Assembly: GCA_038496445.1 (NCBI GenBank)
Contig: JALMLS010000166.1
Coordinates: forward strand, 1-64,000
Direction of reading: 5' to 3'
Length of the DNA stretch: 64,000 nt
Origin: Trichosphaerium sp. ATCC 40318
Taxonomy: Eukaryota > Protista > Tubulinea
Shown here piece by piece: positions 26,074 through 45,563 of the stretch (position 1 is the stretch's first letter; each line of letters starts with the position of its first letter). Position numbers and translations under genes: made by a program. The notes beneath the pieces are model-generated. The model was not told the origin of the DNA. It saw only the letters and a program-made list of their open reading frames with translations, and did not search any database.

Positions 26074-27051
26074 ATGGTGCGTTCTGAATATACATTTAAC
26101 AACGAATACAAGTGCAATACCTGCATCTTTGTAGCAGTGCTGTAACAACTGTTTTAAAATCATTCGTAGAGTCTGAACTTGACGTCACTCCCTGTAGAAG
26201 TACTTTGTTCGATTTATTCAGTTCTAGACGATGTAAGTAGATACAAGATTGCTCAGACATCCTGGTTTAGCGCTAATATTATACGACTTGAATTGGGACT
26301 CTGCGATATAGTTGTACAATCTGACGAACACGCAATGCAGCTTTCGAAGTATCGCGCCTTTATAAAGAAATCTTGTCTAAGAATAGACGCTGATAATGTC
26401 TCTAACCAAGGTATTAAAGCACTAGCTGGCGCTCATATTGTTGATTTGTTGGATTGCTATGATATCACTGATGAAGGAGTCAAAGCATTAGCAGGCATAC
26501 ACTCAATAAACCTTTGTGGGTGCGATAATGTGTCATCAGATGCGATTGCAACGCTTTCTGGTGTTCACACTGTTTCTCTTTGTAACTTGACTACAGTCAA
26601 TGATAACGCTGTAAAAGCACTAGCTGGAGCACATATAATGATCCTAGACGGGTGTGTTAACATTACAGATGAAGGTGTCAAACACCTGAAAGGCGTTCAT
26701 ACTATTGGTTTGTGCGATATCTACAACGTAACAGACGTTGGTGCAACAGCTCTTGCTGGAGCTCATACTATAGATCTTACTAGGACGTCAGTTTCAGACG
26801 TAGGCGTTTGTGCATTGGCTGGAGCACATACACTTATTTTGGAAGGTTTAAAGCACGTGACGGATGTAGGCATAAAAGCGGTTGCTGGAGTGCATACACT
26901 TAATGTGAAAGGATGCCCACGTGTTACTGATGCGAGTATGAATAGTATAGTTGGTGTGCGTGTCATTAATGTAACAGGAAGTGGTGTTACAGAAGAAGGA
27001 TTGAAAGTATTACAAGGACATGGCTATGAAGTAGATATTGAACAAGACTAA
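26074..27051 (+). CDS. F-box/LRR protein
   Basis: ATG|intron|SLNLTSLPVEVLCSIYSVL (F-box-like), then ~24-aa LRRs (VHTxxLxxxxxVTDxGVKAL). Confidence 0.8.
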
Positions 27052-32422: not shown

Positions 32423-32639
32423 TTATGCTGAAATGTGCAACCACATGTTTGGTATTTTGTCCTTTTCAATATTTATGACTGTTACACCTGCCAATTGTTT
32501 TATCCCATCATTCGTTAATGTACAACTACCCAAGTCAATATGATGCACACCTGCCAAACATGATAGAGCATTATCTCTTAGTTGTGTACAACCATACATC
32601 TCTATACAGGGTATACCAGCCAGAAGTTTCATCACGTGC
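32423..32639 (-). pseudogene. LRR fragment or orphan exon related to the F-box/LRR family
   Basis: LAGIPCIEMYGCTQLRDNALSCLAGVHHIDLGSCTLTNDGIKQLAGV; only 2-3 repeats, preceded by a CTAAC branch site and AG. Confidence 0.55.
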
Positions 32640-32727
32640 CTTGAAGATTATTTTTGCAATTGTTTCGTTGTGTTAGAAAATACTCAACTCCTTCATCTTG
32701 AATTTGTTAATTGCTGAACGATTGATT

Positions 32728-34071
32728 TTATTGTAAGTTACACCTCTTTCCTTTTACTTTTTTCACTTCTGCGTTTATTGCAAGACGAATAGCTTCATCA
32801 AAAGCTTTTTTGAAACCTTTACAAGTGAGCGCTGACATTTCAAGATATTTTGCAACTTCCGACTTTTGGGCTAAACCAAGACCTTCATCGTACTGTACTG
32901 ATGAAGGATCTAAAGAAAAAAAAAATTAATGTCAAATCCAAACAATCAAGTTTTCTTCGTTTTGTATGTCATACCATCCTTTCTTAAATCAACTTTAGTA
33001 CCAACAAGTAGTATGGGTACGTTTGGTAAGTTTCTTCTGACTTCAGGTATCCAGTTATTGATAGCGTTATGTAACGATTGTCTATTAACAAGGGAGAAAC
33101 AAACCATGATAATATCCTGGTGTTTATACGCTATTTGTCGAAGTCTATCATAATCTGATCCTCCTGGCATATCTACTATAGCAAGCTGTATTATCTGACA
33201 ATCCCACATGATATTAGCTGGGTAACATTCCATGACACCTGGTATCTGAAAGAAAAAAAAATCAAAAAGAGGATTATTTAATAGGGTATGGAATTCCCAT
33301 TCGGATTTAAAATGTGACAGTATAAATCGTACGGTGACTAAATTAACGTCATAAGAGTACGTACATATTCTCCAGGGAAAGCATTGGTTGTATAACTTAT
33401 AATAGCGCAAGTCTTTCCTAAACTGAATAAAAAAGTTGTTCACCACCAACAGTTTTCTTGACTTTCTCCGTTTTTCTTGACGAAAAAGAGGGTATAAAAA
33501 AAAATAAATCACGTGCCTACACCAACATCTCCCACAAGTGCTAGGTTTATTTTACCAGCATGCTAGTTTCGGTTTCCATAGAGAGTACACAACAATATTT
33601 TTTTAGCACACGTGACGCACCTGTATGCCTTCTTGCTCCACAATGCCTTTTTCACCAGACCATTTCACCAACGAAACTTTAAACAACCCTTTTTTAAGAC
33701 GATCAGACGACAATCAAAATGTCAATGGTTTGATACCTTTGTAGTGTTTTTGGTTCTTCATATCCTTGAATCCGATTAGAAACTGTTTTAATACCATCAC
33801 AGACTCTTACCTCAGGTGATGGAGGCTCCCAGGACCTAGCACCAGGGAATTCAAGTATATGGCGTTCCCATACCGTATTTTTTGTTGTAAGGTTCTCCCA
33901 ATGCCAAGAGACAAGGCATAGTGAACATAAATCGTACCTAGAATGTTTTTAAAAACGAAAACGGTTTTTTTTTGTTGATTCGCCTAACAGTCATTGATCG
34001 TACCACTCTACATTGGAGAAAACCTCAAGCCAGATTATATCAGGAAGTGTTTCCCACGTTAAACCAGACAT
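32728..34071 (-). CDS. F-box domain fused to an atypical Rho/Rac-family GTPase with C-terminal CAAX
   Basis: Spliced [23 protein letters not shown]|[38 protein letters not shown]|[17 protein letters not shown]|[48 protein letters not shown]. Confidence 0.8.
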
Positions 34072-34475
34072 TGCGTTTTGGAGGTTTTGACAAGTCTTTT
34101 CTGTTCAAGACCTCTATACGGTCTCTTTGATTACAGCTCCTTCACGCGCTTTTTCTATCGACATATTATTGTATTAAACAACATCCAGATGAGCTGTATT
34201 GGTTCTTTTCACGCGATGTCCACTTGTAGTTTCCTGTACACGTGACAATTATGTAAGTCGTATTCCACATAAAAATCCATACAGTGATTATTGATTGTAG
34301 AACTTTAGTTAACTGAAAATCTAATGAATACTCACTATTCTCACAAAAGACTGTTGCTGTATATCGACAATGAGGGACAAAGCATAAAATTTGTTTAATT
34401 TTTTTGTTTTTTTTGTACAATTGCAGGCGAGCTTTGGTGTTGCAACAATAACGCCTTTTTTTTTTCTTGTTTTTC

Positions 34476-37400
34476 TTACTTGTTGGCGTTCTTTTGACAC
34501 ATCTGAATAAATTCTGGGTATCTAAGCAACAACATGAGTGAATAACAACCCACCACGTGAAAAAAAATAAAAAAGAAAAAAAGAAGAAAGCAAAAAACGT
34601 ACGAGAAAGTCTTTTGTTGTCGATCTTCAACAAAATGACTGAAAAAATATTGATCTGAAGGTTGTCCTTGTGAGAAGATAAGGAGCTGTTGAAAGTAAGG
34701 TCTATTCCTTCTAATATCACCAATAATACATCTAACACGCTCTGAAAGTGATGTAGTATCCTTAGAAGGCACAAGAGACAGCTAAAAAGACAAACAAGTC
34801 AACAACCTTGAAAACAAAAAAAAAACAAAAAAAAACAAGATTTGTTCTTTAACGCCACTTGGTGACGTCAAAAATGAGAGCCAGTATCTTTGATAGTAGC
34901 AATAGATTCACTAAAAGATGAAAAAGTATTGTAGGTGTTTGTTTAAGTACCTTTGAGAGATCGACATTCTGTAGAGAAGAGACACCAAAGAGTGAATTGA
35001 CAACATCACCCATTGCTTGTCCACCAATCCATACGATGATATTGATACCATTATCTAATAGATAGATACCTGTACGATCTATTCTAGCTGAAGAAAGACC
35101 TAATATTGCAGGCATGGTAGTTCGACCAGTGTTAGGATCAACCTGACCCATTTCTGGTGCAAGATTGTGTATTGAGTAAAGACGTGGATACATCATCGCT
35201 GTAGCAAGTTCTAAATAGATAATATAAGCAAAATAGCATATTCAACATATAATAGCAGTTTTAGAGGAAGTATTTGGGATGAGGTCCACAAGTGGAACAA
35301 AAAGGGGATCATATAAAAAAAGTTTCACTGAAAAAATCCCTTGTTTTTCACGTGCCTATTGAACTGCTCTTGAAGAGGCAGCACACTGCAGCTCTGAAAT
35401 CTGGTGTAACTCCCATTGACCCAGATCGGAATACAGGTGACTTAATAAGTCCAAGAACGTAAAGAGGAAGAAGTGAAAGAGCTGGAGGTAGCATTTGTGC
35501 GCCAACACCGGAATTTCCAAGAAGTGTTTTATATTGCTTCATAATGGCCACACACTTGTTTACAATAGCCTCTCTTGCAACTCTAAGATTACTTTCAAGT
35601 GCTTTATCAATAGCTAAAGTAAAAATAAGCGAACAGAAGTCAAAGACAGATCAAGGAAAGCGAAAGTTCATCAACATTTTCGTACCCATTTTACCCATAA
35701 GGCTTACTATTGGTATCAAGTTTCCTGACTCAAGAATCTGTCTTGGGCTCTTTGAAGATGGCATACAAACAGTCAATGAACGTATTCTTCTATCACCTTG
35801 AGTAGATGTATAAAGTAATGCTGTTTGAATCAAAACATAAGGTTTATCGAAATCTTTAGTAGGAGCCAATTGAACACCGAATCCCTAATAGAAAAATAAA
35901 TATAACCACGTGGTACTTATAAAAAATAGTTCTTCTAATATCTATAAAAATAAACATACCTTATCTGCATCTGTAACAGGCAATGACAACAAGTCCTTAT
36001 GCCTTAAAAAGAAATTTCCGAAATATCTGTTAATTTTCACATTCTTTGAAGCACGAACACGCATAACAGCTTCCCAAGCAGTCTGACGTGTTAATGTATG
36101 TCTTAACTCTTTACAAAGCTTCTCTAAGTGTCTAGCAGGTAGATACTCTGGGTAATAAGCAATCTGACCGCCAGTAATCGTGCAAAGAGTTCCAATCGTC
36201 GGAACATCAAGAGGTTTAGATGAAAAGAAACAACCATCAAATCCTACTTGACATCCAATGCATTCCTCAGCTAGAGCTGTATAAAAATCTCCTTGAGGCT
36301 TCATCATATTGATTTCTTTATCTTGACCAAGTAACTTTGGATCATAACGCTTCTTGAGCGCACCAAGGCCACTTATTGGCGTTGAAGATGAAAAAAATGT
36401 TATTTTTCCGCCCATGTGTTTAACTACTTGAACAGCAGTTTTAAGCGCAGAGCCTACAACACAACTTGTCAGAATTATTGAAAAAAAAAAGAAAAACAAA
36501 CTGAAAAAAAAAAAAAGAAAAAGTCAAATTCTCAGTTTGTTCTTACCTAAGCAGGCGTGTACGCCTTGTGTTTGTGCAAACATCTTTGGTAATCGCTCTA
36601 ATAAAGCCCGTACTTGTGGCATAGATGTTCTGAGATCAGTCAATAGTGTTTCCATTGTACCAGGAACAAACGCTTCTTTTGGGTTTTCAGCAACAACAAA
36701 CATTTCAGGCAAGCTCGCTCCTTCTTTGAAGCTGTAAAGGTGTACAGCTGCATCGAATGTGATGAACCCAATCTTTGTTCTATCTCCACCTGGTAGATCA
36801 TCTAATAGACCCTCTATAGCCTTGGCTATACCTTTAAGGAGACCTGCAGCGACTACTGGATAGGAGACATCGATAACAAAGAAATAAACAGATGGCATTG
36901 GTGGTCTAACCATGTAGTCTTGAGGGGCTAGGAACTCAACAGCACAGTGTGTTAGTTCAGGACGTGTTGTGACATCTGTTCTGTAACCATTGGCATCAAG
37001 ACCACAGACATAGGCGTCCTTCACTATCGCGAACATTAATTTTTATCAAAATTTTTCTTTACCTCAAAAAATGGTGTAGAAAAACCGTTTTACGGCGAAA
37101 ACTGTTTTGAATGGAAGGAATTTCTGTCTCAACAGTGTTTTTGTGAGTTTTTTTTGACATACCTTCGTTTAGGAAAGAGCAAAATGAGCATGTCCAGCGT
37201 CTGCCCATCTCTACAAAGCGAACGTATGGATTGATATAGGCCCTACACCTTCTGCAGCGAATGACGCCAATTGCTCCAAAATCTACCATTGGAAGGTTCT
37301 AAACGATACGTGTGAATATTGTGAAGAGTATTGAAGCGTTACCTGAGCAGTTCGGGCAAGTGGAGTGACGATACAACCCATAGGCAATGAACACCCTCGC

Positions 37401-43994: not shown

Positions 43995-45563
43995 ATGTTA
44001 TTGGGCATGCCTATCGAGATTTTATCGACTATTATGAGCTATACAACAACTGGTCGATTTGCAGTTTGTCAAACATGCCATCTCCTTTCATCTATCATTC
44101 ACGATATCATCGGTTACGATAGTGTCAGAATAACGACATCTGAACAAGCTCTTCAAGTTTTAACACACCAAGGCATAATGAAACACACAGCAATTACGTT
44201 AGTTGGTAATGAAGAAACCGGGTTCCCTTCCAACAATCTCGTCGAACAATTCGCAGGAGTTCATACCATAAAACTCGATTCTTGCAGACACATCACATAT
44301 AAAAGCATAAAAGCTCTTTCAGGTGTTCACACCATCGACTTTTGTCGTACTTCAGTTACAGATGAGTGTGTTAAAGCACTCAAAGGTGTTCATACTATCA
44401 ATCTCGCTTATTTGAGGAGTATAACAGATGCAAGTGTTGCAACACTTGCAGGAGTTCATACCATAAACCTGGATATAACACGTGTAACAGATAAAAGTAT
44501 TAAAGCACTCAAAGGTGTCCATACTATTCATCTTGATGATACTAGTGTTACAGATGAAGGCATTGGGTTTCTTAAGGGAGTTCATACTATTTACTTAAAT
44601 GGCACTGATGTAACAGATAAAGGATTGAAAGTTCTTGGCAGTGCTGGAGTACATGCCATTCAACTTAATGCAACCAAAGTGACAGATGAGGGTATAAGTG
44701 CACTCAAAGGTGTTCATACTGTCTCTCTCGGCCATACATCAGTTACCGATGAAGGCATTAAAGCACTCAAAGGTGTTCATACTATCGACCTCAGTAGTAC
44801 ATCAGTTACAGATGAAGGCATTAAAGCGCTCAAAGGTGTTCATACTATTGACCTCAGTAGTACATCAGTTACAGATGAAGGCATTAAAGCGCTCAAAGGT
44901 GTTCATACTATCGACCTCAGTAGTACATCAATTACAGATGAAGGCATTAAAGCGCTCAAAGGTGTTCATACTATCTGGCTCACCCATACATCAGTTACAG
45001 ATGAAGGCATTAAAGCGCTCAAAGGTGTTCATACTATCGACCTTGGGTACACTATGGTATCAGATGAAGCAATCAAAAGTCTTAATGGTGTGCACACAAT
45101 AGACATTGCTGCTTGTGATAACATAACTATTGAAGGAATAAAAGCGCTGAAAGGAGCACATACGATTACCATAAGTGGTTCTAGTGATAAGGGAATATAT
45201 GACAGAGAAAAAAATAAATGGTTTCCAGAGTTCAATGGGGAAGGTATGAAAGACGAATGGCTTCAACACCTTTCTGATACAAACACACTGTTTATTATTA
45301 ATGGTCAAAATGCGTTTACTGATGATGGAATCAAAGCATTGACAAATGTCAAAGTACTTGTTCTGTATGAGTGCAATGCAATAACAGGTGATGGGTTTTC
45401 AACATTAGTCAACCTTGAACAAATCACTTTGACTCGTTGTTCTGAAATAACAGATTCGGGCTTGAAACGCTTGCACTCTGTGAAGCGTATTAATGTGAGG
45501 AATTGTAGACATATTACAAAAGAGGGTGTTAAGGCAATGGGAGGTAGATGTACCTACAGGTAA
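43995..45563 (+). CDS. Intronless F-box/LRR protein, 522 aa
   Basis: MLLGMPIEILSTIMSY (F-box-like), then many 22-aa LRRs VHTIxLxxTSVTDEGIKALKG. Confidence 0.88.
   Translation: MLLGMPIEILSTIMSYTTTGRFAVCQTCHLLSSIIHDIIGYDSVRITTSEQALQVLTHQGIMKHTAITLVGNEETGFPSNNLVEQFAGVHTIKLDSCRHITYKSIKALSGVHTIDFCRTSVTDECVKALKGVHTINLAYLRSITDASVATLAGVHTINLDITRVTDKSIKALKGVHTIHLDDTSVTDEGIGFLKGVHTIYLNGTDVTDKGLKVLGSAGVHAIQLNATKVTDEGISALKGVHTVSLGHTSVTDEGIKALKGVHTIDLSSTSVTDEGIKALKGVHTIDLSSTSVTDEGIKALKGVHTIDLSSTSITDEGIKALKGVHTIWLTHTSVTDEGIKALKGVHTIDLGYTMVSDEAIKSLNGVHTIDIAACDNITIEGIKALKGAHTITISGSSDKGIYDREKNKWFPEFNGEGMKDEWLQHLSDTNTLFIINGQNAFTDDGIKALTNVKVLVLYECNAITGDGFSTLVNLEQITLTRCSEITDSGLKRLHSVKRINVRNCRHITKEGVKAMGGRCTYR
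44700..45045 (+). repeat. Near-identical 66-bp tandem repeats encoding LRR units
   Basis: About five copies of GC(A/G)CTCAAAGGTGTTCATACT..ACATCAGTTACAGATGAAGGCATTAAA. Confidence 0.9.

Follow-up and report, generated by a model that had tools for sequence, protein, structure and literature searches.

An expressed F-box–Rac-like fusion gene with a CaaX tail in Trichosphaerium sp. ATCC 40318

We analysed a 64,000-nucleotide (nt) stretch of the genome of the amoeba Trichosphaerium sp. ATCC 40318 (assembly GCA_038496445.1, contig JALMLS010000166.1, positions 1 to 64,000; hereafter the window) and found in it a real, expressed gene that encodes an F-box–Rac-like fusion protein. The gene lies on the minus strand at 34071..32728, with its ATG at 34071 and its TAA at 32730-32728, and its F-box and its guanine-nucleotide-binding (G) domain share one reading frame and one transcript. 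[quoted passage not shown] We propose, with moderate confidence, that the product is a membrane-anchored F-box–Rac-like protein whose nucleotide-locked Rac fold would serve as the substrate-binding part of a ubiquitin ligase.

Results

Spliced RNA defines the gene and places both of its halves on one message. The coding sequence consists of eight exons totalling 843 nt and encodes 280 residues, with the exon joins set by RNA contigs. These contigs came from public runs, placed on 32500-34400, and from a Joint Genome Institute (JGI) transcriptome (sample 3300016894), which contributed a single 930-nt contig, L016, which starts at the third base of the initiation codon and extends into the 3' untranslated region (UTR). 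With two start-codon bases added to L016 and a retained intron removed from it to hold the frame, it disagrees with the coding sequence of the window gene at 6 of 843 positions (99.3% identity), and because the difference is so small we take it to be a transcript of that gene from a very closely related strain. All introns have support from spliced RNA: introns 1, 3, 4, 5, 6 and 7 in the contigs from public runs and introns 1, 2, 3, 5, 6 and 7 in L016. A sequence-only reading of the window had described an F-box fused in frame to a Rac-like domain and a CAAX box over seven exons. The in-frame fusion is confirmed, and all the motifs named in that reading lie in the open frame from ATG 34071 to TAA 32730-32728 (reverse complement, exons joined); the exon count was wrong, the RNA contigs giving eight. 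Separate transcripts for the F-box and GTPase exons, the outcome that would have undone the fusion, are contradicted by L016, which carries both.

The first four exons encode the F-box and a linker. Exon 1 (34071-34004; 68 nt, residues 1-23) contains, as read from the sequence, the start ATG and the first half of the F-box, and exon 2 (33937-33811; 127 nt, residues 23-65) contains the second half, assigned with Pfam, and a short tail (..SWEPPSPE). Between them, intron 1 (34003-33938), removed in RNA contigs X2 record 9 and L016, interrupts the F-box domain proper, which occupies residues 6-50 (34056-33856) according to the translation and the Pfam match to residues 5-49 of L016:2-292. L016 joins exon 2 directly to GATATGAA, and this junction gives intron 2 as 33810-33765 (46 nt, GT-AG) and exon 3 as 33764-33737 (28 nt, residues 66-75, linker). 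The remainder of the linker is encoded by exon 4 (33688-33621; 68 nt, residues 75-97), whose acceptor at 33689|33688 is seen in both X2 record 6 and L016.

The last four exons encode the G domain and the tail. On the evidence of RNA contigs and translation, exon 5 (33562-33517; 46 nt, residues 98-113) supplies strand beta-1 and opens the P-loop (GDVGV), and exon 6 (33417-33365; 53 nt, residues 113-130) supplies the P-loop GKT and helix alpha-1. Exon 7 (33245-32975; 271 nt, residues 131-221), assigned by Pfam Ras and an alignment with Rac1, holds switch I, Val154, DMPGGS and TKVD. Exon 8 (32909-32728; 182 nt, residues 221-280 and the stop), assigned by Pfam and an alignment with Rac3, holds the site of the Rho-insert deletion, SAL, the polybasic stretch and the CaaX box.

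The introns measure 46-119 nt, and six of them are GT-AG. The remaining one, intron 5 (33516-33418; 99 nt), is GC-AG in spliced RNA and falls within the P-loop codon for Gly113. In X1 record 3 its joint, 33416/33516, carries a 4-nt ambiguity for which GC-AG is the sole near-canonical placement; the exact junction is given by L016 and by P0002, the 174-residue spliced G domain translated from L016. The GC donor is kept in a duplicate of the gene on contig C187 (L002), and the homologous intron of a further paralog on contig C5 is GT-AG; both copies are described below.

Splice placements that disagreed with the RNA were rejected. A model in which intron 2 had 28 nt and exon 3 had 46 was discarded in favour of the 46-nt intron 2 seen in L016; the discarded model had put an in-frame TGA into the C187 copy, and that TGA is intronic under the L016 model. 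Likewise, an intron 3 acceptor at 33677|33676 gave way to the one at 33689|33688 on which the RNA contigs agree, a change that adds four residues.

Splicing varies where the adaptor half meets the G domain. Intron 4 (33620-33563; 58 nt, GT-AG) takes three forms in the RNA contigs. In X1 record 3 it is removed and exon 4 is joined to exon 5 in frame. In L016 it is kept, and an in-frame TAA after five codons would end the protein after the F-box and linker. In X2 record 6 a different donor and acceptor are used, a choice that also reaches an in-frame TAA. A gene caller split L016 into open reading frames (ORFs) of 101 and 174 residues because the retained intron 4 holds its in-frame TAA.

Database matches point to a Rac origin for the G domain. 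Exon 7 alone matches Pfam Ras with an E-value of 1.6e-16, exon 8 with 0.0026 (17.8 bits, below the 21.6-bit cut-off) and P0002, the one specific relative among the matches of an exon-7 profile search, with 1.4e-34. The best solved matches of P0002 are Rac1/2/3 (E ~1e-50), ahead of Cdc42 (~1e-43), and its nearest proteins in a large collection are ordinary Rac1 sequences at 48-53% identity.

Alignment to human Rac proteins separates what this domain has kept from what it has lost. Residue numbering was fixed by a gap-free alignment of exon 7 with human Rac1 33-122 and by an alignment of P0002 with Rac3 9-191. The nucleotide-binding motifs are all present: G1 as GDVGVGKT (residues 108-115), G3 as DMPG, G4 as TKVD (residues 213-216, 32999-32988; TKLD in Rac1) and G5 as SAL (residues 246-248). 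The catalytic and switch residues Gly12, Thr35, Gln61 and Trp56 are all replaced. Val110 stands at Rac1 position 12, followed by Gly at position 13; Gly133 (33239-33237), in the switch I sequence YIPGVM, replaces Thr35; Val154 replaces Trp56; and DMPGGS (residues 155-160, 33173-33156) occupies the place of DTAGQE, with Gly159 at position 61. In the exon 7 alignment Phe37, Asp38 and Asn39 have become Met, Glu and Cys. The Rho insert (Rac1 ~123-135) is deleted, appearing as a 10-residue gap in the alignment of P0002 with Rac3. The sequence-only reading had picked out a Rac-like domain with Val12, Gly35 in YIPGVM and DMPGGS, followed by a polybasic CaaX tail, and each of these features is present. 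The tail consists of KKVKGKR (residues 270-276, 32763-32743) followed by CNLQ (residues 277-280, 32742-32731). A CaaX box in which X is Gln predicts farnesylation.

The F-box, which that reading had called complete, scores above the gathering cut-offs of both Pfam families tested (PF00646 and PF12937). Spliced L016:2-292 matches F-box-like with 29.0 bits (cut-off 24.3) and F-box with 28.1 bits (cut-off 20.5) over profile positions 1-45; exon 2 by itself matches F-box-like over positions 20-45 with an E-value of 4e-4. A linker of 47 residues separates the F-box from the G domain. The genome contains Skp1 (99 bits) and several cullin genes, and a role for the fusion protein as an adaptor of a Skp1–Cullin-1–F-box (SCF) ligase is plausible. 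The principal Skp1 gene, at G000:C137:79701-79844 (L017), is split into three or more coding exons. Other Skp1-like loci occur on C57, C88 and C430; those on C88 and C430 have identical scores and are probably duplicated contigs or haplotigs.

The gene belongs to a family. A six-frame search of the 70-Mb assembly returned two further copies, on G000:C187 and G000:C5. The C187 copy is a recent duplicate. The window and C187 share a gene-sized duplicated unit, found by pairwise alignment of L001 and L002, that spans 32705..34245 in the window (minus strand). Its ends fall about 170 nt upstream of the ATG and about 20 nt beyond the stop, and the flanks outside it are unalignable. Within the unit the exons are 89-100% identical without indels, and every indel is intronic. 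Under the corrected gene model the C187 frame is intact, and its protein differs from that of the window at 28 residues. These include Rac1 positions 35 (Ser in C187) and 13 (Ala in C187), and C187 is on that account the less degenerate of the two. Between the two copies the ratio of non-synonymous to synonymous substitution rates (dN/dS) is 0.34 in the F-box part.

Both of these copies are expressed. We rejected the assumption that all public-run RNA contigs derive from the window copy, because 15 of the 18 listed differences between those contigs and the window equal the C187 base. The junction evidence is accordingly pooled over the two genes, which are identical in structure. L016 is window-like at 37 of the 41 sites that distinguish the copies, and C187-like at the first two and the last of these sites and in the 3' UTR; this mosaic is either an assembly chimera of two transcripts or the outcome of gene conversion in that strain.

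The C5 copy is an old paralog with the same overall design and a G domain that has decayed further. It encodes 286 residues in six exons, and its introns are all GT-AG and 40-51 nt long. Like the window gene it has the same start and first residues, an intron at the position of intron 1, after "EW", and an intron inside the P-loop codon. Its product has an F-box, GDHGVGKT, DMPSES (in which Gly60 is lost), MKLD, a poly-Gln spacer and a CVLQ end. Switch I is enlarged and unrelated, and the Rho insert is absent. Identity to the window protein is 58% in the F-box, 34% in the G domain and 19% in the linker, and the last C5 exon has no homologous protein at E <= 0.001.

Set side by side, the paralogs show which parts of the protein have been kept. 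All three carry a CaaX box ending in Gln (CNLQ, CNIQ and CVLQ). Across the series Ser35 gives way to Gly35 and then switch I is replaced altogether, Gly60 becomes Ser and TKxD becomes MKLD, while the F-box, the P-loop and the tail stay. The fusion, the P-loop Lys/Thr, the "DMP" variant of G3, the missing insert and the CxLQ tail are old and retained features, and switch function is not.

Discussion

The mechanism that we propose combines a ligase-docking domain, a membrane anchor and a Rac fold that no longer switches. The N-terminal F-box would dock on Skp1, and hence on a Cullin-1 ligase, and the polybasic-CNLQ tail would be farnesylated and keep the protein at the membrane. The P-loop Lys/Thr, Asp57/Gly60, TKxD and SAL are all in place, so that the Rac-derived domain is predicted still to bind nucleotide. 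It is predicted neither to hydrolyse GTP nor to switch normally because of Val12, Gly61, Gly35 and the missing Rho insert. A domain unable to hydrolyse or switch could serve as a static module for binding proteins and carry partners to a membrane-held ligase, as RhoBTB does for Cullin-3 and FBXO4 with its GTPase-fold domain, and variable splicing of intron 4 could yield an F-box-plus-linker product without the G domain. The pattern among the paralogs argues for a nucleotide-holding, non-switching Rac fold used as a ligase-attached binding module. The sequence-only reading had cast the G domain as bait for Rac regulators or effectors, which now looks doubtful: Thr35, Phe37, Asp38, Asn39, Trp56 and the Rho insert are changed or deleted, and residues that contact effectors and GEFs are not only lost here, they vary among the three paralogs.

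Some of the observations count against our proposal. Productive splicing of intron 4 occurs in only one of the three RNA contigs that cross it, and the full-length protein may be a minor product. When a Skp1 fragment, the 58-residue C-terminal exon, was docked with residues 2-61 of the F-box part (60 residues, from L016), the interface score ipSAE was 0.29, the mark being 0.34, which favours neither binding nor its absence. Sequence searches were run on single exons, L016 or P0002, and the joined 280-residue model was compared in local scripts only. Finally, the G domains of the window and C187 copies give a dN/dS of ~1.2 (23.5 non-synonymous versus 5.5 synonymous changes), a value not distinguishable from neutral drift; because it fits drift, the G domain of at least one copy may be little constrained.

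A first alternative makes the GTPase itself the substrate. The F-box could couple the atypical GTPase to the SCF as a self-destruct tag, producing rapid self-turnover and a short-lived, constitutively on membrane signal. Rapid turnover has been proposed as the F-box's role in TbFRP, a FYVE–F-box–Ras-like GTPase of Euglenozoa (PMC3593210), and the nucleotide-binding motifs and membrane tail are retained here as in a signalling GTPase. However, the effector residues of switch I vary among the paralogs, with Gly or Ser at position 35 and switch I replaced in C5, and such variation fits poorly with an effector output that is conserved. We regard this alternative as unlikely, and as one to be kept in view.

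Drift without function offers a second account, in which the window and C187 genes are young copies in a birth-and-death family, with a decaying G domain, non-productive RNA and little or no function. The G-domain dN/dS between the twins, the loss from the window copy of Ser35 and Ala13, both still present in C187, and the two of three contigs in which intron 4 is either kept or misspliced, leaving in-frame stops, would all fit. Yet all three copies keep full frames, splice sites, the P-loop Lys/Thr, the CaaX box and the F-box, which is constrained between the twins (dN/dS 0.34); the old C5 paralog retains the design at 34% G-domain identity; and both twins are transcribed. Decay of this kind seems to us distinctly unlikely.

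The F-box might also engage Skp1 outside the SCF. Prenylated F-box proteins exist (FBXL2, FBXO10 and Rcy1), and a protein acting like yeast Rcy1 would work with Skp1 without a cullin, in membrane traffic, with the Rac-like domain as its membrane- or partner-binding part. An F-box and a CaaX box on one protein is the Rcy1/FBXL2 pattern (PMC2175155, PMC9988375), and the CaaX tail is conserved in all three paralogs, but the window protein has no sequence relation to Rcy1, and these features do not tell SCF from non-SCF use. We consider a cullin-free role improbable.

More speculatively, the Rac-like domain could be a non-cycling, membrane-tethered, ligase-linked decoy that captures bacterial or viral effectors and toxins aimed at host Rho GTPases and marks them for destruction. 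An arms race would fit a G-domain surface that changes quickly beside a constrained F-box (dN/dS ~1.2 versus 0.34), the duplication of the gene and the many F-box–GTPase fusions of Naegleria. This idea is a long shot; if it were true, the protein would play in an amoeba the part that integrated decoys play in plant immune receptors. Equally hard to credit is a locus that yields mainly a 101-residue F-box-only protein competing for Skp1, its GTPase part untranslated or internally started: the sole near-full-length RNA contig does retain intron 4, and the gene caller did split it into 101- and 174-residue ORFs, but X1 record 3 links exon 4 to exon 5 in frame, the G-domain start lacks an in-frame ATG (the 174-residue ORF was called from a GTG within the P-loop) and the fusion frame of the C5 paralog is uninterrupted.

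The F-box–Rac design is not new, and the window locus joins a kind of protein that has been catalogued and is functionally uncharacterised. In Naegleria, many entries listed as "Rac" by Herman et al. 2021, BMC Biol (PMC8296547, Additional file 4, Table S8) carry an F-box at the N-terminus and finish in CFLQ, CMLQ or CILQ, which lowers the novelty that the sequence-only reading had attached to the architecture. The order of parts is the same in both organisms, an N-terminal F-box, a linker, a divergent Rac-like domain and a CaaX box ending in Gln, and in Naegleria too the proteins are multi-copy. There they have been catalogued from sequence only. Several of them keep DTAGQE, whereas the window family lacks the Rho insert and has DMPGG or DMPSE, with Val or His standing at position 12. 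The organisms differ, the genes described here are intron-rich, and the likeness is one of architecture, the Naegleria sequences having been compared as Table S8 entries. Beyond those table rows, our locus extends the kind to a second organism and supplies a gene model backed by RNA. No F-box was found in the 18 matches with an N-terminal extension that were scanned among the 150 best exon-7 matches, or among the precomputed annotations of the 120 best relatives of P0002, both of which are weak evidence of absence, because the listings hold just the best matches and records from this genome or a close neighbour may be missing; our literature searches returned no paper on the functional study of any F-box–Rho protein.

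Recruitment of small-GTPase folds into ubiquitin ligases is itself a known concept, represented by RhoBTB, FBXO4 and TRIM23, and to it the locus contributes a three-paralog series. In RhoBTB (PMC4931677) an atypical Rho-family G domain is likewise built into the substrate adaptor of a cullin-RING ligase. RhoBTB proteins carry a C-terminal tandem BTB for Cullin-3 and most lack a CaaX box, whereas the window protein has an N-terminal F-box pointing to Skp1/Cullin-1 and a polybasic CaaX tail; no Pfam scan of the gene gave a BTB match, and 15 residues remain beyond the G domain. FBXO4 (PMC7086354) shares with the window protein the layout of an F-box, a linker and an atypical small-GTPase-fold domain, which in FBXO4 holds the substrate TRF1. 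Unlike that of FBXO4, the domain studied here is 48-53% identical to Rac1, has an intact P-loop and is followed by a lipid-anchor tail. The FBXO4 domain, to our knowledge, no longer binds nucleotide and bears no recognisable resemblance to Rho in its sequence.

Other lineages have joined an F-box to other GTPase families. Members of the ARF family are fused to an F-box or a BTB domain (Vargova et al. 2021, doi 10.1101/2020.10.31.363457), and these proteins and TbFRP resemble the window protein in placing a small GTPase and an F-box (or BTB) in one lineage-specific polypeptide. TbFRP reaches membranes through its FYVE domain, where the window protein has a CaaX tail instead. Natural substitutions at the equivalents of Ras positions 12 and 61 are found in Rnd and RhoH, Rho proteins that are constitutively GTP-bound, and Rnd proteins have a farnesyl-type CaaX box. 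Both are stand-alone GTPases with the switch I Thr and the Rho insert still present and with no ligase-docking domain, in contrast to the F-box-bearing window protein.

Neighbouring genes and other loci

The palindrome CACGTG is over-represented in the window, with 39 copies against 13 expected and none of 100 shuffles reaching 39. Four copies lie in or beside the fusion gene: at 32633 (downstream), 33510 (at the intron 5 donor), 33609 (in intron 4) and 34239 (upstream). The intronic copies are conserved in the C187 duplicate. CACGTG may be a common regulatory motif of this genome.

Upstream on the same strand, an ORF at 34849-35196 (minus strand) contains a gelsolin repeat (Pfam E 1.9e-8) and resembles the C-terminal portion of a coat protein of the Sec23/Sec24 type; the fusion gene is not part of it. 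Just downstream, a 70-residue ORF at 32423-32635 (minus strand) reads like the cysteine-containing leucine-rich repeats (LRRs) of FBXL proteins and has no Pfam match at E 0.01. Larger ORFs with LRR_6 repeats lie at 43995-45563 and 26179-27051.

Elsewhere in the assembly are four intronless HSP70 genes that match the full Pfam profile (G000:C8:25652-27466, C8:66110-67924, C56:189563-191377 and C56:211415-213229). The best database identity of the first, C8:25652-27466, is 63-69%, which is unusually divergent for a cytosolic HSP70.

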